64,000 nucleotides of DNA from positions 372,001 through 436,000 of IMG/VR virus record IMGVR_UViG_3300046665_000548; one strand, given 5' to 3'. The translations under genes were made by a program, and so were the position numbers. Positions 2,430 through 6,530 of this stretch are shown here, in pieces (the first letter of the stretch is position 1; every line of letters starts with the position of its first letter). The notes under the pieces are model-generated. The model saw nothing but the letters and a program-made list of their open reading frames with translations. It did no database searches and was not told the DNA's origin.

Positions 2430-5255
2430 TTACTCGCCACCAGACTGCGCTGTTCGCACTCCAGCGTCTCTGACTTCTTTTTTGAGACCAATGATAGCCG
2501 CCATCTGACCGTCGAATTGACTACGTGCGTCGCTGCGGCGGTTTTCCATCGATTGTGCTAATGATCCAATATTCTGGGCAAGCACACTCCTCGTGGCATT
2601 GATTTCGTCTGCTACTCCGTCGATCCGGCTTCCAACGTCGCCAACAGCTTGAGTCACTGGAGTAGCAGCACTGACGCGTTCCACCGCTCCGGCTACTTGC
2701 TGCCCAATGTCGCCGCCAATAGCGTTCGTGCGGCTTTCCTGCTGTGTTGCCGAGGTGTTACGTTCAACCGCGCCGCCTAGATAACGAAGTACGTTGCTGA
2801 CGCTCTCCATTTCTCTCGTGAGAGCGGGATCAACGGGCGCTCCGCCGCCCGCGTCACGTCTCTTTGTGAGATTAACAAGCTCTTTTTGCAGGATGAACAC
2901 CTGTTCTTCGGTCGATAATCCTCGAAGCACTCCGCCCATCACTGTATTCAACGCAGCAAGTTGATTACCCAACATTTGGTTCGAACCAACGATGGCAGAT
3001 GCCCCGGTATCACGGGGCAATCCGGCCTCATATGATTCTACCTGTCTAATTGTTCGTTGCTGTTGTGCTCGGCCCATTGCCTCATTGGTTGCTTGCTGTG
3101 CAGCATCGGCTCGCTTGTTGGCAATATCCAATGCATCGTTCACGTTTCTCAGAGCGTTTTTCTGCGCGTCGATGGCGTTTTGATTGCGGAGATTTTCACT
3201 CACACTTTCGAGACGAACGATGTCCTGTTGAATACTCTGGCGCTGACTGGCGAGACTAGCCGCCTGTTTGTCGGCCAAAATCTTTTCCAGATAAGCGTTT
3301 TCGGCTGCTCTCTCTTGCTTGAGTGCTTCGATTCTGCCTTGAAGTTCGTTGATCTTGCTCTGGTTGCCTGCTCCCTGCGCTCGGGACAATTCGCCTTCAA
3401 GCATGTTCATTTGCTGGCGAATTTGATCTAGCTTTGCGCGATGTGGGCCTTCGTCTTCATTGAGCCCGCTTCTTGCCACAAGCGTCATTGCACCAATGCC
3501 AGCCGCGATAGCCGCAAGTGCTGGTGCTCCTAAGATTCCGACAAGACTGCTGAGCGCGGATGCAAGTATCCCGAAGACGCCCGAACCTCCGCCGATCAGT
3601 CCAAGTGCTCCGAAGGCTAGCTTTAGTCCCATAAGGCCGCCGACAACGGCTAGAATGGTCCCGCCGTGTGACTCCAGCTTGTCCGCAAGCCATCCGATAC
3701 CATTGGCGGCTTTTGTTATTCCCTTGAGTAAAGATTCGGTCGCTGTAGCAACGTCCTGTGCAAAGTTTCCGGAGAATGTTGCGCCGAAAAGTTTGAAAAT
3801 AGACGAAGCCGCTCCACTGAGAGCCTGCTCAAGTTTCTGAAGACCGCCGCTACCTCTGAAGCTCTCGAAGCCTTTCATGACTGCGGTCATACCGCTTTCC
3901 ATCATGCCGTACATCTTCAGACGAATATCACCGGTCGCCCTGAGCCAAAGGTCTTCGAAACTTGCCGCCGCCGCAGTGAGCTTGGCCCGCGAATCTGCCA
4001 TCAGCGCGATATTCCTGGCATCTTCCTGCTGCTTGGCCGTGATCACCCTCTCCATTGCGGGTCCCATAGAGGCCAATTGTTGCCCAGTAGAATCCATTAG
4101 TCGCAACGCGGGTGCAAGCTGGGACATGGTATTGCCGAGAAGAACTCGATAATCCGCGAGGGCTTTTTTGTTCGATTCCGTGGGTGACTTCATGGCTTGT
4201 TCCATCAAATCGCGAAGATGGAAAACCATGTCAGTCATACCGTGATCCATCATGTCCTTGGCCGGACCCGATTGGATCATGCCCGGATTGTCCATGTGCC
4301 CGGCTACCTGAGTAGTCAACTTGGTGAGGAATTGTCCTGCCTCTCCTCCCAGGGCCGCAAACTGTGGAGTAACGTAGTTCATCATTTCATCGAACTTACG
4401 TTTCATATCGTCCGATAGAGTTTCCCTATACGAAACAACTCCAGCATCTCGCTGAGAAGCAGCCGTTTGCTTTAGAATCTCTTCACGGCTAGTGCCAAAC
4501 GCTTGTGACAGGATTGATGCGTTAGTGGCCAGCTTAGAAATCTGCTCAGCCGCCGCTACGCGGCTCGTCATTTCGAGTCGGCCCTGCACCCGCATGGTTT
4601 CAGTATAGTCACCGATATAGTCATTGATTTGCGAGACGGTCATGCCGAGCATATTGAAATCTTGCAAATTTCTTCGTACGCCCGTGGCAAGACCGAGGAA
4701 ACCGCTAGGACCTCCAAGTTGCGACATTGCGGCCGAATTTTTCTGAGTAACGCGTACCAGTTCTCCCATGGTAACGCCGCCAGCCGCTGCTGCTTTGCCC
4801 ATGTCCTGCATGCCGCCAACGAAACCTTGACCGGCGTCGTTCATCTTTCGATAGTTGTCCAGCATCGACGTGCCGTAATCAACTAATTGGCCAACGATAG
4901 AACCGAGGAACGATCCCTTAGCGAGACCCTTTAAGGCGTTAAGAGCGCCGTCTGATCCTTCGCCAAGCAGCTTCAACTTTCCAGAAACGGTATCAACGCT
5001 TCGGTTGAAACCCGAACGGGCGTCATCCAACATACTGTTGACAGTACGACGTTGCTGATTTGCCGCCATGTCTTGTTTGTCGTTGTATTCCTTCAGCCCC
5101 TTCATGAAGCTGTCGAAGCTGCCGCCGCCTAGGCCACCTCCGCCGCCTCCATTAGCGATAGAGCGCGCGACGCCGCCCCATATCTGGTTGCCGCGCTGCA
5201 TTTCGGCTAGGAGCCGAGACCATTGATGTTCCGAAGGTGTGTTGTCGTCAGACAT
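2430..5255 (-). CDS. Tail tape measure-like protein
   Basis: 941 aa, Ala/Gly/Gln-rich and helical, with a hydrophobic central segment and coiled coil; lies divergent to the gp26-like chaperone gene. Confidence 0.75.
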   Translation of the reverse strand: MSDDNTPSEHQWSRLLAEMQRGNQIWGGVARSIANGGGGGGLGGGSFDSFMKGLKEYNDKQDMAANQQRRTVNSMLDDARSGFNRSVDTVSGKLKLLGEGSDGALNALKGLAKGSFLGSIVGQLVDYGTSMLDNYRKMNDAGQGFVGGMQDMGKAAAAGGVTMGELVRVTQKNSAAMSQLGGPSGFLGLATGVRRNLQDFNMLGMTVSQINDYIGDYTETMRVQGRLEMTSRVAAAEQISKLATNASILSQAFGTSREEILKQTAASQRDAGVVSYRETLSDDMKRKFDEMMNYVTPQFAALGGEAGQFLTKLTTQVAGHMDNPGMIQSGPAKDMMDHGMTDMVFHLRDLMEQAMKSPTESNKKALADYRVLLGNTMSQLAPALRLMDSTGQQLASMGPAMERVITAKQQEDARNIALMADSRAKLTAAAASFEDLWLRATGDIRLKMYGMMESGMTAVMKGFESFRGSGGLQKLEQALSGAASSIFKLFGATFSGNFAQDVATATESLLKGITKAANGIGWLADKLESHGGTILAVVGGLMGLKLAFGALGLIGGGSGVFGILASALSSLVGILGAPALAAIAAGIGAMTLVARSGLNEDEGPHRAKLDQIRQQMNMLEGELSRAQGAGNQSKINELQGRIEALKQERAAENAYLEKILADKQAASLASQRQSIQQDIVRLESVSENLRNQNAIDAQKNALRNVNDALDIANKRADAAQQATNEAMGRAQQQRTIRQVESYEAGLPRDTGASAIVGSNQMLGNQLAALNTVMGGVLRGLSTEEQVFILQKELVNLTKRRDAGGGAPVDPALTREMESVSNVLRYLGGAVERNTSATQQESRTNAIGGDIGQQVAGAVERVSAATPVTQAVGDVGSRIDGVADEINATRSVLAQNIGSLAQSMENRRSDARSQFDGQMAAIIGLKKEVRDAGVRTAQSGGE

Positions 5256-5351: not shown

Positions 5352-6284
5352 ATGACTAAGAGAGTTGATGATCTCGAAGACGAATTTTCAGAAGACGAGC
5401 TTTTTACGCCACAGCCGCCACGTCGTGCTGCTGCTCCGCAGGGAGGCGGAAATCCACTCGCCAAGTATTTCAGAATGCCTGGAGTACATATTGCGCTGCC
5501 GACAAAGGGAGCGTTCTATCCGCCGGGGATGATTGAGTTCACCGACTCGCACGAACTGCCCGTGCTACCAATGCGCGCCGCTGACGAAATTCTAATGAAA
5601 TCCCCTGATGCTCTTATGAGCGGATACGCGTTGGAAAAGCTTATCGAAAGCTGTGTTCCGTCGATCAAGAACCCAAAGCTGGTATCTACCCCAGACCTTG
5701 ACGTTCTGCTGCTCGCGATCCGAGTTGCTTCTTACGGCAACAAGATGGGCGTGGAAACTACTTGCCCAAAATGCAAGACCGAGAATTCTTTCGATTGCGA
5801 TCTTCCTAGCATCATTGCTTCTATGACCGATGTGCCTAGCGAAATTTCAGTCCGTCTCACGTCTGAAATCGTCGCTTACCTACGTCCGTTCAATCTGAAA
5901 AATGCTACGAAGATGTCTCTTATAGCTTTCGAGCAGACTAGGAAGCTTCAATCACTCGACCTTGGAGCAGAAGAAGCCACGCGTATTCGCTCCATCAATG
6001 AAAGCTACGACACTTTGACCAAAGAGAATGTCGCGGCTGCGGCTGATTGTGTGATCAAGGTCGTAGTTCCAGAAGGCGCAGTTACTGATAAGAAATCCAT
6101 TTCAGAGTTCATTATGGGAGCGCCATCAGATTTCATTAACAAGATCGATGATAAGCTGAGGGAGATCAACGCACTCGGTATCGATAGACGCATCAAGGTT
6201 AAGTGCCCGAACGAGGAATGTGGACACGATTGGGAAAGCGAAATTCAGTTCGATCCGACAACTTTTTTCGCTCGCGGCTCCTGA
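5352..6284 (+). CDS. Baseplate hub / tail assembly chaperone (T4 gp26-like)
   Basis: NPLAKYFR..HIALPTKG, ADEILMKSPDALMSG, DLDVLLLAIRVASYG, two CxxC-type motifs (CPKC, CPNEEC). Likely start MTKR at 5352. Confidence 0.75.
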   Translation: MTKRVDDLEDEFSEDELFTPQPPRRAAAPQGGGNPLAKYFRMPGVHIALPTKGAFYPPGMIEFTDSHELPVLPMRAADEILMKSPDALMSGYALEKLIESCVPSIKNPKLVSTPDLDVLLLAIRVASYGNKMGVETTCPKCKTENSFDCDLPSIIASMTDVPSEISVRLTSEIVAYLRPFNLKNATKMSLIAFEQTRKLQSLDLGAEEATRIRSINESYDTLTKENVAAAADCVIKVVVPEGAVTDKKSISEFIMGAPSDFINKIDDKLREINALGIDRRIKVKCPNEECGHDWESEIQFDPTTFFARGS

Positions 6285-6314
6285 GGTGTGAAACACCAGA
6301 AGCCGTTCAGGAGC
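6263..6314 (+). promoter_or_regulatory. Programmed -1 ribosomal frameshift element
   Basis: In-frame heptamer T TTT TTC (6263-6269), 7-nt spacer, stem GCTCCTGA (6277-6284)/TCAGGAGC (6307-6314) enclosing hairpin GGTGT-GAA-ACACC. Confidence 0.75.
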
Positions 6315-6502
6315 TTCTACACGACTATCGGTACGAATCTAGGGAACTAACCAAGCACATCACGCAACTGATGTGGTATATGCGGGGAAGCTTGACCCGC
6401 GAGGAGGCTTGGACTCTGAGCGTTGAAGAACGTAAAGAGATTATGAAATTGGTAGATGAACGAATCAAGCTCGTTGAAAAAACCGGTTTACCTTTACTTT
6501 AA
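6263..6502 (+). CDS. gp51-like / GT-like extension reached by -1 frameshift from the gp26-like gene
   Basis: The -1 frame is open from the slippery site to TAA at 6502 (FFRSRLLRCETPE...LMWYMRGSLTREEAWTLSVEER); no good independent start. Confidence 0.65.
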   Translation, partial: FFRSRLLRCETPEAVQELLHDYRYESRELTKHITQLMWYMRGSLTREEAWTLSVEERKEIMKLVDERIKLVEKTGLPLL

Positions 6503-6506
6503 CAAA

Positions 6507-6530
6507 AAACGGAGCCGAAAGGCTCCGTTT
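6507..6530. terminator. Intrinsic terminator hairpin between convergent genes
   Basis: AAACGGAGCC-GAAA-GGCTCCGTTT perfect hairpin; A-tract on the left gives a U-tail on the minus strand. Confidence 0.8.

Follow-up and report, generated by a model that had tools for sequence, protein, structure and literature searches.

In phage T4 the baseplate hub assembly proteins gp26 (208 aa) and gp51 (249 aa) are paralogues that both match the whole PF12322 model, gp51 differing by a C-terminal tail of about 48 additional residues. Both are listed as hub-assembly chaperones, and gp51 is absent from virions (PMC3004832). T4 encodes them in two diverged genes on opposite strands, close to the hub and tape-measure cluster (51-27-28-29). 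The long-tailed phages use a different expression strategy, in which a -1 slip on a heptamer near the 3' end of a tail-assembly gene yields a short form and a C-terminally extended form in a fixed ratio, as with lambda gpG and gpGT; this frameshift is reported to be conserved among them (Xu, Hendrix and Duda 2004). These genes lie between the tail tube and tape-measure genes, on the same strand and immediately upstream of the latter; the short part binds the tape measure, the extension binds the tube protein, and both forms are needed and absent from virions. In the contractile-tailed phage P2 a T-rich slippery run (TTTTTTG) produces the extended form of the gpE/gpE+E' pair, which are small helical chaperones encoded directly upstream of the tape-measure gene.

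Here we describe a locus at which a giant phage very probably uses a programmed -1 ribosomal frameshift to make a short and a long version of a gp26-type protein from one gene. The window analysed is a stretch of 64,000 nucleotides (positions 372,001 to 436,000 of IMG/VR record IMGVR_UViG_3300046665_000548) of a 607,744-bp genome. An earlier note, made from the sequence alone, had proposed a frameshift fusing a gp26-like and a gp51-like ORF as the equivalent of the G/GT pair; what it observed in the sequence is confirmed, whereas its interpretation is only partly supported.

Organization of the locus

The features of the locus are as follows:

2430-5255, minus strand: divergent neighbour, a 941-aa Gly-rich, coiled-coil protein with a long hydrophobic segment, likely the tape-measure protein
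5352-6284, plus strand: 0-frame gene, gp26-type baseplate-hub assembly protein, short form, 310 aa
6263-6269, plus strand: slippery heptamer T_TTT_TTC in the 0-frame register
6277-6314, plus strand: candidate stimulatory stem-loop 7 nt after the heptamer, with an 8-bp outer stem (6277-6284/6307-6314), an inner 5-bp stem (6285-6289/6293-6297) and a 9-nt 3' bulge
6269-6502, plus strand: -1 frame extension, 77 codons read after the slip plus the stop at 6500-6502
6507-6530, no strand assigned: 10-bp G+C-rich hairpin just after the extension's stop, with an A-run before and a T-run after on the minus strand; terminator-like, mainly for the convergent minus-strand gene

The ORF starting at ATG 5352 ends ACT TTT TTC GCT CGC GGC TCC TGA (stop 6282-6284), such that T_TTT_TTC is an X_XXY_YYZ heptamer in the 0-frame register and TTC is the fifth codon before the stop, as the earlier note had stated. 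The -1 frame reads FFRSRLLRCETPE...LPLL, and together with residues 1-306 of the 0-frame gene it gives a predicted long form of 383 aa. The source genome's own gene call covers only 43 aa of the extension. In the window the -1 frame is also open for 20 codons upstream of the heptamer and holds GTG 6203 and ATG 6218, although GAGGA directly abuts the ATG, which is poor spacing. The claim that the downstream ORF lacks a good start is thus fair, but a start does exist; it is not conserved, and in most relatives the -1 frame is closed 0-3 codons before the heptamer.

The 0-frame product matches PF12322 (T4_baseplate; E 1.1e-18, 68 bits against a cut-off of 24.5, model positions 42-218 of 219) and the baseplate hub family phrog_150 (E 5.6e-22), and it is the only PF12322 match in the genome. 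Its AF2 model has a pLDDT of 90.8 and pTM of 0.83, and BFVD fold matches to T4-like hub assembly proteins reach E values down to 8e-14. It contains two CxxC zinc-ribbon halves (C138/C141 and C285/C290) and a C-terminal FDPxxFF motif. In 45 relatives C138 and C141 are 90% or more conserved and C285, C290 and F305 are invariant; in a second alignment of 15 sequences all four Cys and F306 are invariant, although gp51's C-terminus was misaligned there by MAFFT.

The 941-aa neighbour was described in the earlier note as the tape measure gene beside the cassette, but it is on the opposite strand, and its tape-measure identity is likely but weakly supported. Its language-model neighbours are PF10145 and PF20155 tape-measure clusters (score 0.93-0.94). 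Its N-terminal part is homologous to the divergent neighbour of the gp26-like gene in at least 22 related loci, including the MS-detected structural protein of PA5oct, and the syntenic, divergent neighbour in RaK2 (no sequence match to protein P0003 was found) is annotated as similar to a tape-measure protein. No match was found in Pfam, PHROG or NCBIfam, nor by tblastn against the phage records. In Atu_ph07 the annotated tape-measure gene is about 15 genes away. In the CBB virion proteome list the likely tape-measure neighbour (CBB_251) is present and no CBB_249 or CBB_250 appears, provided that the RefSeq and published numbering agree.

Conservation of the slippery site

We examined 91 related loci, comprising 11 cultured jumbo phages (RaK2, 121Q, CBB, PA5oct, XaC1, Atu_ph07, Phosso, SCTP-2, RAS14, Xoo-sp13 and Vibrio 2.275.O), 79 IMG/VR contigs and the window, and a canonical heptamer in register with its -1 ORF recurs in 90 of them, at 25-50% protein identity, which is more than chance. 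Of these loci 88 carry T_TTT_TTY, two carry another canonical heptamer, A_AAT_TTT, with a shorter T-run, and one (L037) has a T6 run in a different codon register. Synonymous positions are fixed at the site. At the 61 T-run sites of 63 non-redundant loci, the preceding codon ends in T in 61 of 61 (background 0.57-0.64), across eight different codons encoding eight different amino acids, and the first Phe is TTT in 61 of 61. The last codon of the heptamer is TTC in 59 of all 63 loci, even though TTC is the minority Phe codon (38%) in these genes, and other FF pairs in the same genes use TTT TTC only 3 times in 14.

Amino-acid conservation switches frame exactly at the heptamer, with pairwise identity over the next five codons of 0.48 in the -1 frame and 0.25 in the 0 frame. 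The -1 frame often has no ATG, GTG or TTG for 14-50 codons, PA5oct having none in the whole ORF, and gene callers truncate or skip it. Nine of the 11 GenBank records examined carry annotation here, showing two ORFs (some truncated) or only the upstream one, and none of the 11 annotates a frameshift.

RNA structure downstream of the heptamer

The spacer, outer stem and inner GGTGT/ACACC hairpin are present as the earlier note described them, and ViennaRNA returns this fold at -19.2 kcal/mol. An alternative fold starting at 6270 scores -20.7 kcal/mol (z = -2.2), with 8 of 200 shuffled sequences folding as well, so that in the window alone the hairpin is only moderately unusual. Across the 63 non-redundant loci the 60 nt after the slip site are on average 4.6 kcal/mol more stable than other windows of the same gene (Wilcoxon P 1.6e-9), with 27 of 63 in the top 5% and 10 of 63 showing nothing notable. 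The note had named conservation of the hairpin in homologues as a check, and RNAalifold on the 63 aligned slip-site regions found no common structure: the 5' arm, which encodes RLL, stays fixed, but its 3' partner moves between subclades. We therefore report only the enrichment in stability. No Rfam family matches around the site.

The extension and natural long forms

A profile of 52 of the -1 extensions finds 725 proteins at E<=1e-3, and among the 150 best hits are 20 natural in-frame long forms of 319-351 aa, which carry the same body and tail in one frame with a junction ...F(R/K)xK(L/I)... like the predicted transframe junction. The AF2 model is compact (pLDDT 87.7, pTM 0.84). These in-frame forms belong to another jumbo-phage clade, and all four such genes with context (loci L105-L108) follow a tail-less paralogue in tandem. 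The window's genome by contrast has a single PF12322 gene, and the 60 rows examined of 97 related phage records show one place each. The pattern is either two genes or one gene with a slip site. Three of the four tail-less paralogues in the two-gene clade still carry T_TTT_TTC or T_TTT_TTA at the same NFF motif although their -1 frame is closed; the run can therefore persist without a frameshift product, either as a relic or for another reason.

The earlier note called the downstream ORF gp51-like, but it is not a gp51 homologue as such. The extension resembles only the gp51 tail, and it is the transframe product as a whole that has the gp51 architecture. This match is moderate: hhalign against an alignment of nine diverse T4-like gp51 tails gives a probability of 87.9% (P 3.2e-6), whereas the extension profile against T4 gp51 gives only 5-6 bits and hhalign against a single sequence a probability of 1.4%. 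The family PF28602 is listed on T4-like gp51 in precomputed annotations. The ORF downstream of gp26 in Streptococcus phage GXN1 looked similar by eye but did not match the profile and was dropped.

A probable programmed frameshift and its alternatives

We conclude with high confidence that one gene gives two proteins. In this model most ribosomes translate the gp26-type protein to its stop at 6282-6284, and a fraction slip back one base on T_TTT_TTC, with both Phe-tRNAs re-pairing, probably helped by the stem-loop, and continue in the -1 frame to 6502 to make a long form with the same body plus a 77-residue helical tail. The short form would correspond to T4 gp26 and the long form to T4 gp51, with the frameshift fixing their ratio. 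The comparative analysis establishes the site, the frames, their conservation, the paralogy and the existence of natural fused forms; that slipping actually occurs, its efficiency, the expression of the long form and the chaperone role, including any requirement in hub assembly, absence from virions or contact with the tape measure or tube protein, are inferred. By inference from T4 genetics, both forms would act as non-structural or transient assembly factors for the central hub and tape-measure complex. A complex prediction of residues 60-480 of the likely tape-measure protein with the gp26-like body returned a score of 0.01, which is not evidence either way.

Translation of the downstream ORF as a separate gene, by independent or coupled (stop-start) initiation and acting in trans with the gp26-like protein, is unlikely. 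Five of the 11 phage records call a small separate ORF, the window has the upstream GTG and ATG noted above, and in a distant 484-kb uncultured phage (L013) a weakly similar ORF lies in the +1 frame with its own ATG. Seven of the 63 non-redundant loci have an ATG three codons into the extension, overlapping or just before the 0-frame stop (FFRM...), where coupled re-initiation could add or substitute. However, most loci have no start codon near the beginning of the conserved region, conservation in the -1 frame begins at FF, upstream of the 0-frame stop and of every candidate start, and separate initiation explains neither the fixed third-position T nor the TTT TTC codon choice in the 0-frame register. 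The natural single-frame fusions moreover show that the tail is normally covalently joined to the body.

Transcriptional slippage, in which RNA polymerase adds one U in the T6 run so that a fraction of mRNAs encode the same long form in-frame, is similarly unlikely. The site is a homopolymer (T6, and T7 in RAS14 and Xoo-sp13), one extra U gives exactly ...FFR..., and L037 keeps its T6 run in a different register. But six T is short for efficient polymerase slippage, the run starts at codon position 3 in 88 of 91 loci, a register that matters to the ribosome and not to the polymerase, the two A_AAT_TTT loci shorten the run to T5 yet keep the X_XXY_YYZ pattern, and a stable RNA structure 3-9 nt downstream is enriched. 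A homopolymer sequencing error or a pseudogenised in-frame fusion is very unlikely, as the same T6C and frame relation occur in 11 independently sequenced isolates and 79 metagenomic contigs, and both frames are under purifying selection. One metagenomic contig (L109) has T7 and an in-frame fusion, but also a second frame break upstream, typical of an error-prone assembly; the apparent in-frame fusion protein P0067 within the frameshift clade, which comes from an error-prone contig, was rejected.

Comparison with known systems

No description of a gp26/gp51 frameshift was found in full-text searches of the open-access literature, which do not cover subscription journals. A conserved frameshift producing gp26-like and gp51-like forms from one gene in a large clade corrects the annotation of this gene pair in the RaK2-like phage records examined, and probably in the many related metagenomic contigs. 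It also provides a concrete, testable model for what gp26 and gp51 do and why both are needed, and shows the same short/long expression logic arising in a protein fold unrelated to known chaperones. The earlier note considered a link between the gp26/gp51-like pair and G/GT as one not usually drawn for T4-type genes; it is not entirely undrawn, since Acinetobacter phage Octan (MT409116) annotates both gp26 and gp51 as 'tape measure protein assembly chaperone'.

With lambda gpG/gpGT the locus shares a slippery heptamer near the 3' end of the upstream ORF, a -1 extension, and a position next to the likely tape-measure gene, and the equivalence holds for the logic of a short and a long form made from one gene. 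It fails for membership: the gene is divergent from the putative tape-measure gene, and its body is a protein of about 280 aa with a zinc ribbon. No tail-chaperone family is matched in Pfam, PHROGs or NCBIfam, no PDB relative was found by sequence, and no PDB fold match was found for the long or short form apart from a generic helical hairpin (Z below 8). P2 is likewise a myovirus with a T-rich slippery run, but its chaperones belong to an unrelated family.

T4 gp26 and gp51 are of the same protein family as the 0-frame product, and as in T4, where the genes lie close to the hub and tape-measure cluster, the gene here adjoins the likely tape-measure gene. The bodies share only about 15-19% identity, the window's tail is about 25 residues longer, and T4 has no heptamer (gp26 ends GAG TTC TTT GAG TTA CTA TAA), one gene plus a -1 slip here supplying, as we predict, both forms. 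In the tandem paralogues of the two-gene jumbo-phage clade, the long copy equals the predicted transframe product in architecture and junction motif, the short copy ends at the NFF motif, and the same divergent large neighbour is present; the two copies are already diverged from each other (38-93 bits) and need no frameshift. It is possible, although we hold this only tentatively, that T4 gp26 and gp51 are the long-missing T4 counterpart of the G/GT pair, having arisen in an unrelated zinc-ribbon fold. In this view the need of large myoviruses for a short form plus a tailed form would be met either by two paralogous genes (T4 and one jumbo clade) or by one gene with a programmed -1 frameshift (RaK2-like jumbo phages and megaphages), a convergent evolution of the same expression logic for tape-measure and hub assembly.

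The Probable Slip Site and the Two Reading Frames

The plus strand of the window contains a 310-residue open reading frame that matches Pfam PF12322, 'T4 bacteriophage base plate protein' (the gp26/gp51 family), with an E value of 1.1e-18, and also matches PHROG 150, 'baseplate hub'. The features of this locus are as follows.

5352-6284, plus strand: gp26-like ORF, from ATG 5352 to TGA 6282-6284, 310 aa
5352-5450, plus strand: segment encoding the first 33 residues of this ORF (acidic, then Pro/Gly-rich)
6263-6269, plus strand: heptamer T_TTT_TTC
6277-6284/6307-6314, plus strand: 8-bp stem with an inner GGTGT/ACACC, after a 7-nt spacer
6500-6502, plus strand: stop of the -1 frame
6507-6530: 10-bp G+C-rich hairpin between the stop of the extension and a convergent minus-strand ORF

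The final codons of the ORF are ACT TTT TTC GCT CGC GGC TCC TGA, and T_TTT_TTC is therefore an X_XXY_YYZ heptamer in the 0-frame register. The -1 frame reads FFRSRLLRCETPE...LPLL and remains open to 6500-6502, such that a slip would give a 383-residue protein consisting of 306 residues of the body and 77 new ones. The first 33 residues are an N-terminal extension found only in the window and its nearest relatives, and are modelled with low confidence (pLDDT 54-67). The stem-loop described in the earlier note is present and folds at about -19 to -21 kcal/mol, with z = -2.2 against shuffles. The hairpin at 6507-6530 resembles a terminator on the minus strand, and only weakly so on the plus strand.

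The window (positions 372001-436000) is part of a 607,744-bp virus record judged to be complete, i.e. a megaphage, which has only this one PF12322 gene. Its nearest cultured relatives at this locus are Sinorhizobium phage Phosso (469 kb) and Agrobacterium phage Atu_ph07 (490 kb).

Conservation among Related Loci

The extension matches no Pfam, PHROG or NCBIfam family, although tblastn finds it next to the gp26-like gene of the jumbo phages Phosso, Atu_ph07, RAS14/CM1, Vibrio 2.275.O and SCTP-2. The gp26-like body is found in 97 phage records of the RaK2-like group. We read 11 of these loci together with 80 IMG/VR loci, and among the 91 loci with an intact 3' end, 86 have T_TTT_TTC and two have T_TTT_TTT. 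Two others (loci L057, at 2346-2352, and L065, at 919-925) have a different canonical heptamer, A_AAT_TTT, whose -1 frame reads KFF, and one (locus L037, near 2300) has ACG TTT TTT ATA, a T6 run one base out of register. All three of these variant loci have an intact extension, that of L037 scoring 47 bits against the extension profile. The 0-frame stop follows 1-11 codons after the heptamer, and the -1 extension is 72-103 aa long with the shared consensus FFRxRLL...PEEI...WYMRGGxSYEEAWxLSxxER.

These patterns reflect more than amino acid conservation. Of 63 non-redundant loci, 61 have the T-run heptamer and the other two have A_AAT_TTT. At those 61 sites the codon preceding the two Phe codons ends in T in 61 of 61 cases, across eight different codons (AAT, AGT, GAT, CAT, ACT, TAT, CGT and GCT), whereas the same genes use T at such sites only 57-64% of the time. 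The first Phe codon is TTT in 61 of 61, and the last codon of the heptamer is TTC in 59 of all 63 loci, even though TTC is the minority Phe codon (38%). Other FF pairs in the same genes are TTT TTC in only 3 of 14 cases. Following the heptamer, pairwise identity over five codons is 0.48 in the -1 frame and 0.25 in the 0 frame.

In most loci the -1 frame has a stop 0-3 codons before the heptamer and then lacks any ATG, GTG or TTG for 14-50 codons; in PA5oct there is none in the whole ORF. Accordingly, annotators call a truncated ORF (Atu_ph07, RAS14), call none (PA5oct, RaK2), or choose a TTG, and the gene call of the window's own source genome covers only 43 aa. In a distinct arrangement, the uncultured phage LR756508 (484 kb; locus L013, ~2150-2600) has a weakly extension-like ORF (15 bits) in the +1 frame after the gp26-like gene, with its own ATG overlapping the end of that gene, which is possibly a free-standing version of the tail.

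Natural Fused Forms and the Two-Gene Arrangement

A profile of 52 extensions, searched against 1.84 billion representative proteins, finds 725 hits at E<=1e-3, most of which are small ORFs. Twenty of the 150 best hits listed are proteins of 319-351 aa with the extension at their C-terminus in a single frame, and their junction, ...LDxxxxF(R/K)xK(L/I)..., is very like the predicted transframe junction FDPxxFF-RxRLL. AlphaFold models one of them as a compact protein (pLDDT 87.7, pTM 0.84) in which approximately the last 80 residues form four helices.

Genomic context is available for four of these genes, which belong to another jumbo-phage clade (loci L105:411-2389, L106:820-2744, L107:1959-3790 and L108:5172-7008, the last on a 327-kb contig with a T4-type portal). 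In all four, the long gene (334-351 aa) is directly preceded on the same strand by a tail-less PF12322 paralogue of 276-294 aa that ends at the NFF motif, and in the three for which that flank is represented a large divergent gene lies upstream, as in the window. An apparent in-frame fusion within the frameshift clade itself (locus L109, 1898-2683) has T7 instead of T6, but it also has a second frame break upstream and most likely reflects homopolymer errors of a long-read assembly.

T4 likewise has two genes, for gp26 and gp51. Both match the whole PF12322 model (E values of 9e-64 and 4e-52 respectively), and gp51 carries about 48 extra C-terminal residues. In RB16 (L102) and a Slopekvirus (L103) the gene order is 54, 51, 26 on one strand, with 51 overlapping 26, which differs from T4, where 26 and 51 are divergent. 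An alignment of nine diverse T4-like gp51 tails matches the extension profile with an hhalign probability of 87.9% and P of 3.2e-6 over 46 columns, although a plain HMM comparison against T4 alone is not significant. Precomputed annotations of T4-like gp51 proteins list a second Pfam family, PF28602, which may describe the gp51 tail.

Genomes thus have either two genes (short and long) or one gene with a slip site, and the window's genome and the RaK2-like isolates have a single copy. We consider this to be the strongest functional argument that both forms are needed and that the frameshift supplies the long one.

RNA Structure Downstream of the Heptamer

No structure is shared at aligned columns of the slip-site regions. 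Even so, the 60 nt beginning 3 nt after the heptamer are on average 4.6 kcal/mol more stable than other windows of the same gene, with a Wilcoxon P of 1.6e-9 for 63 loci and 1.3e-5 for the 23 loci below 45% identity. In 27 of the 63 loci this segment is in the top 5% of the gene, and in 10 of 63 there is nothing notable. The 5' arm (GGCTCCTGA-like, encoding RLL) is fairly constant but pairs with different downstream (Q/E)EL-coding segments in different subclades. A stimulatory hairpin is plausible but not proven, and it may not be universal.

Interpretation and Alternatives

The earlier note's observation of an in-register heptamer followed by an open -1 frame and a stem-loop is confirmed. Its interpretation, a programmed -1 frameshift joining a gp26-like and a gp51-like ORF as a G/GT-type chaperone, is partly supported: a programmed -1 ribosomal frameshift yielding gp26-like and gp51-like forms is the best explanation and is held with high confidence, but the 'gp51-like ORF' should be read as the gp51 tail, and a G/GT-like chaperone mechanism is about as likely as not. 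The heptamer, the two frames and their conservation are seen in the sequences themselves, whereas slippage and the long product, for which there is no direct evidence, are inferred, as is the chaperone function.

Seven of the 63 loci have an ATG three codons into the extension, overlapping or just before the 0-frame stop, so coupled re-initiation may operate in some phages. Transcriptional slippage on T6 would give the same protein, although the fixed codon register, the A_AAT_TTT variants and the downstream structure all favor the ribosome. Three of the four tail-less paralogues in the two-gene clade still carry T_TTT_TTC or T_TTT_TTA at NFF (L105, ~1260-1295; L106, ~1670-1704; L107, ~2755-2789) although their -1 frame closes after 1-2 codons. 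The run can therefore persist without an extension, most simply as a relic of common ancestry with a frameshift ancestor, but perhaps through an unexplained constraint.

Relationship to Known Tail Assembly Systems

A T4 review lists gp26 and gp51 as hub-assembly chaperones (PMC3004832), and one GenBank record, Acinetobacter phage Octan (MT409116; L098), already names both as 'tape measure protein assembly chaperone', so the functional link is not wholly new. The frameshift appears to be new: it is annotated in none of the 11 records examined (9 of which have annotation here), and full-text searches, which did not extend to subscription journals, found no paper describing it.

The divergent neighbor in the window is probably the tape measure gene. 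The language-model neighbors of its product are tape-measure clusters with scores of 0.93-0.94, and the synteny is conserved, with a homologous divergent neighbor in at least 22 related loci, including PA5oct, where the homologue is a structural protein detected by MS. The syntenic neighbor in RaK2 is annotated as tape-measure-like, though no sequence match to the window's protein was found, and no match in the standard families searched (Pfam, PHROG and NCBIfam) or by tblastn against the phage records supports the assignment. A complex prediction with part of the putative tape measure gave no answer.

Comparison with BFVD shows that the fold is that of T4-like hub assembly proteins across many large myoviruses. 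Membership of the G/GT group fails on gene position and on any sequence or fold relation. The parallel with G/GT lies instead in the logic, with short and long forms made by an inferred -1 slip in a tail-assembly factor encoded next to the probable tape measure gene. The locus is of real interest for T4-type tail assembly.
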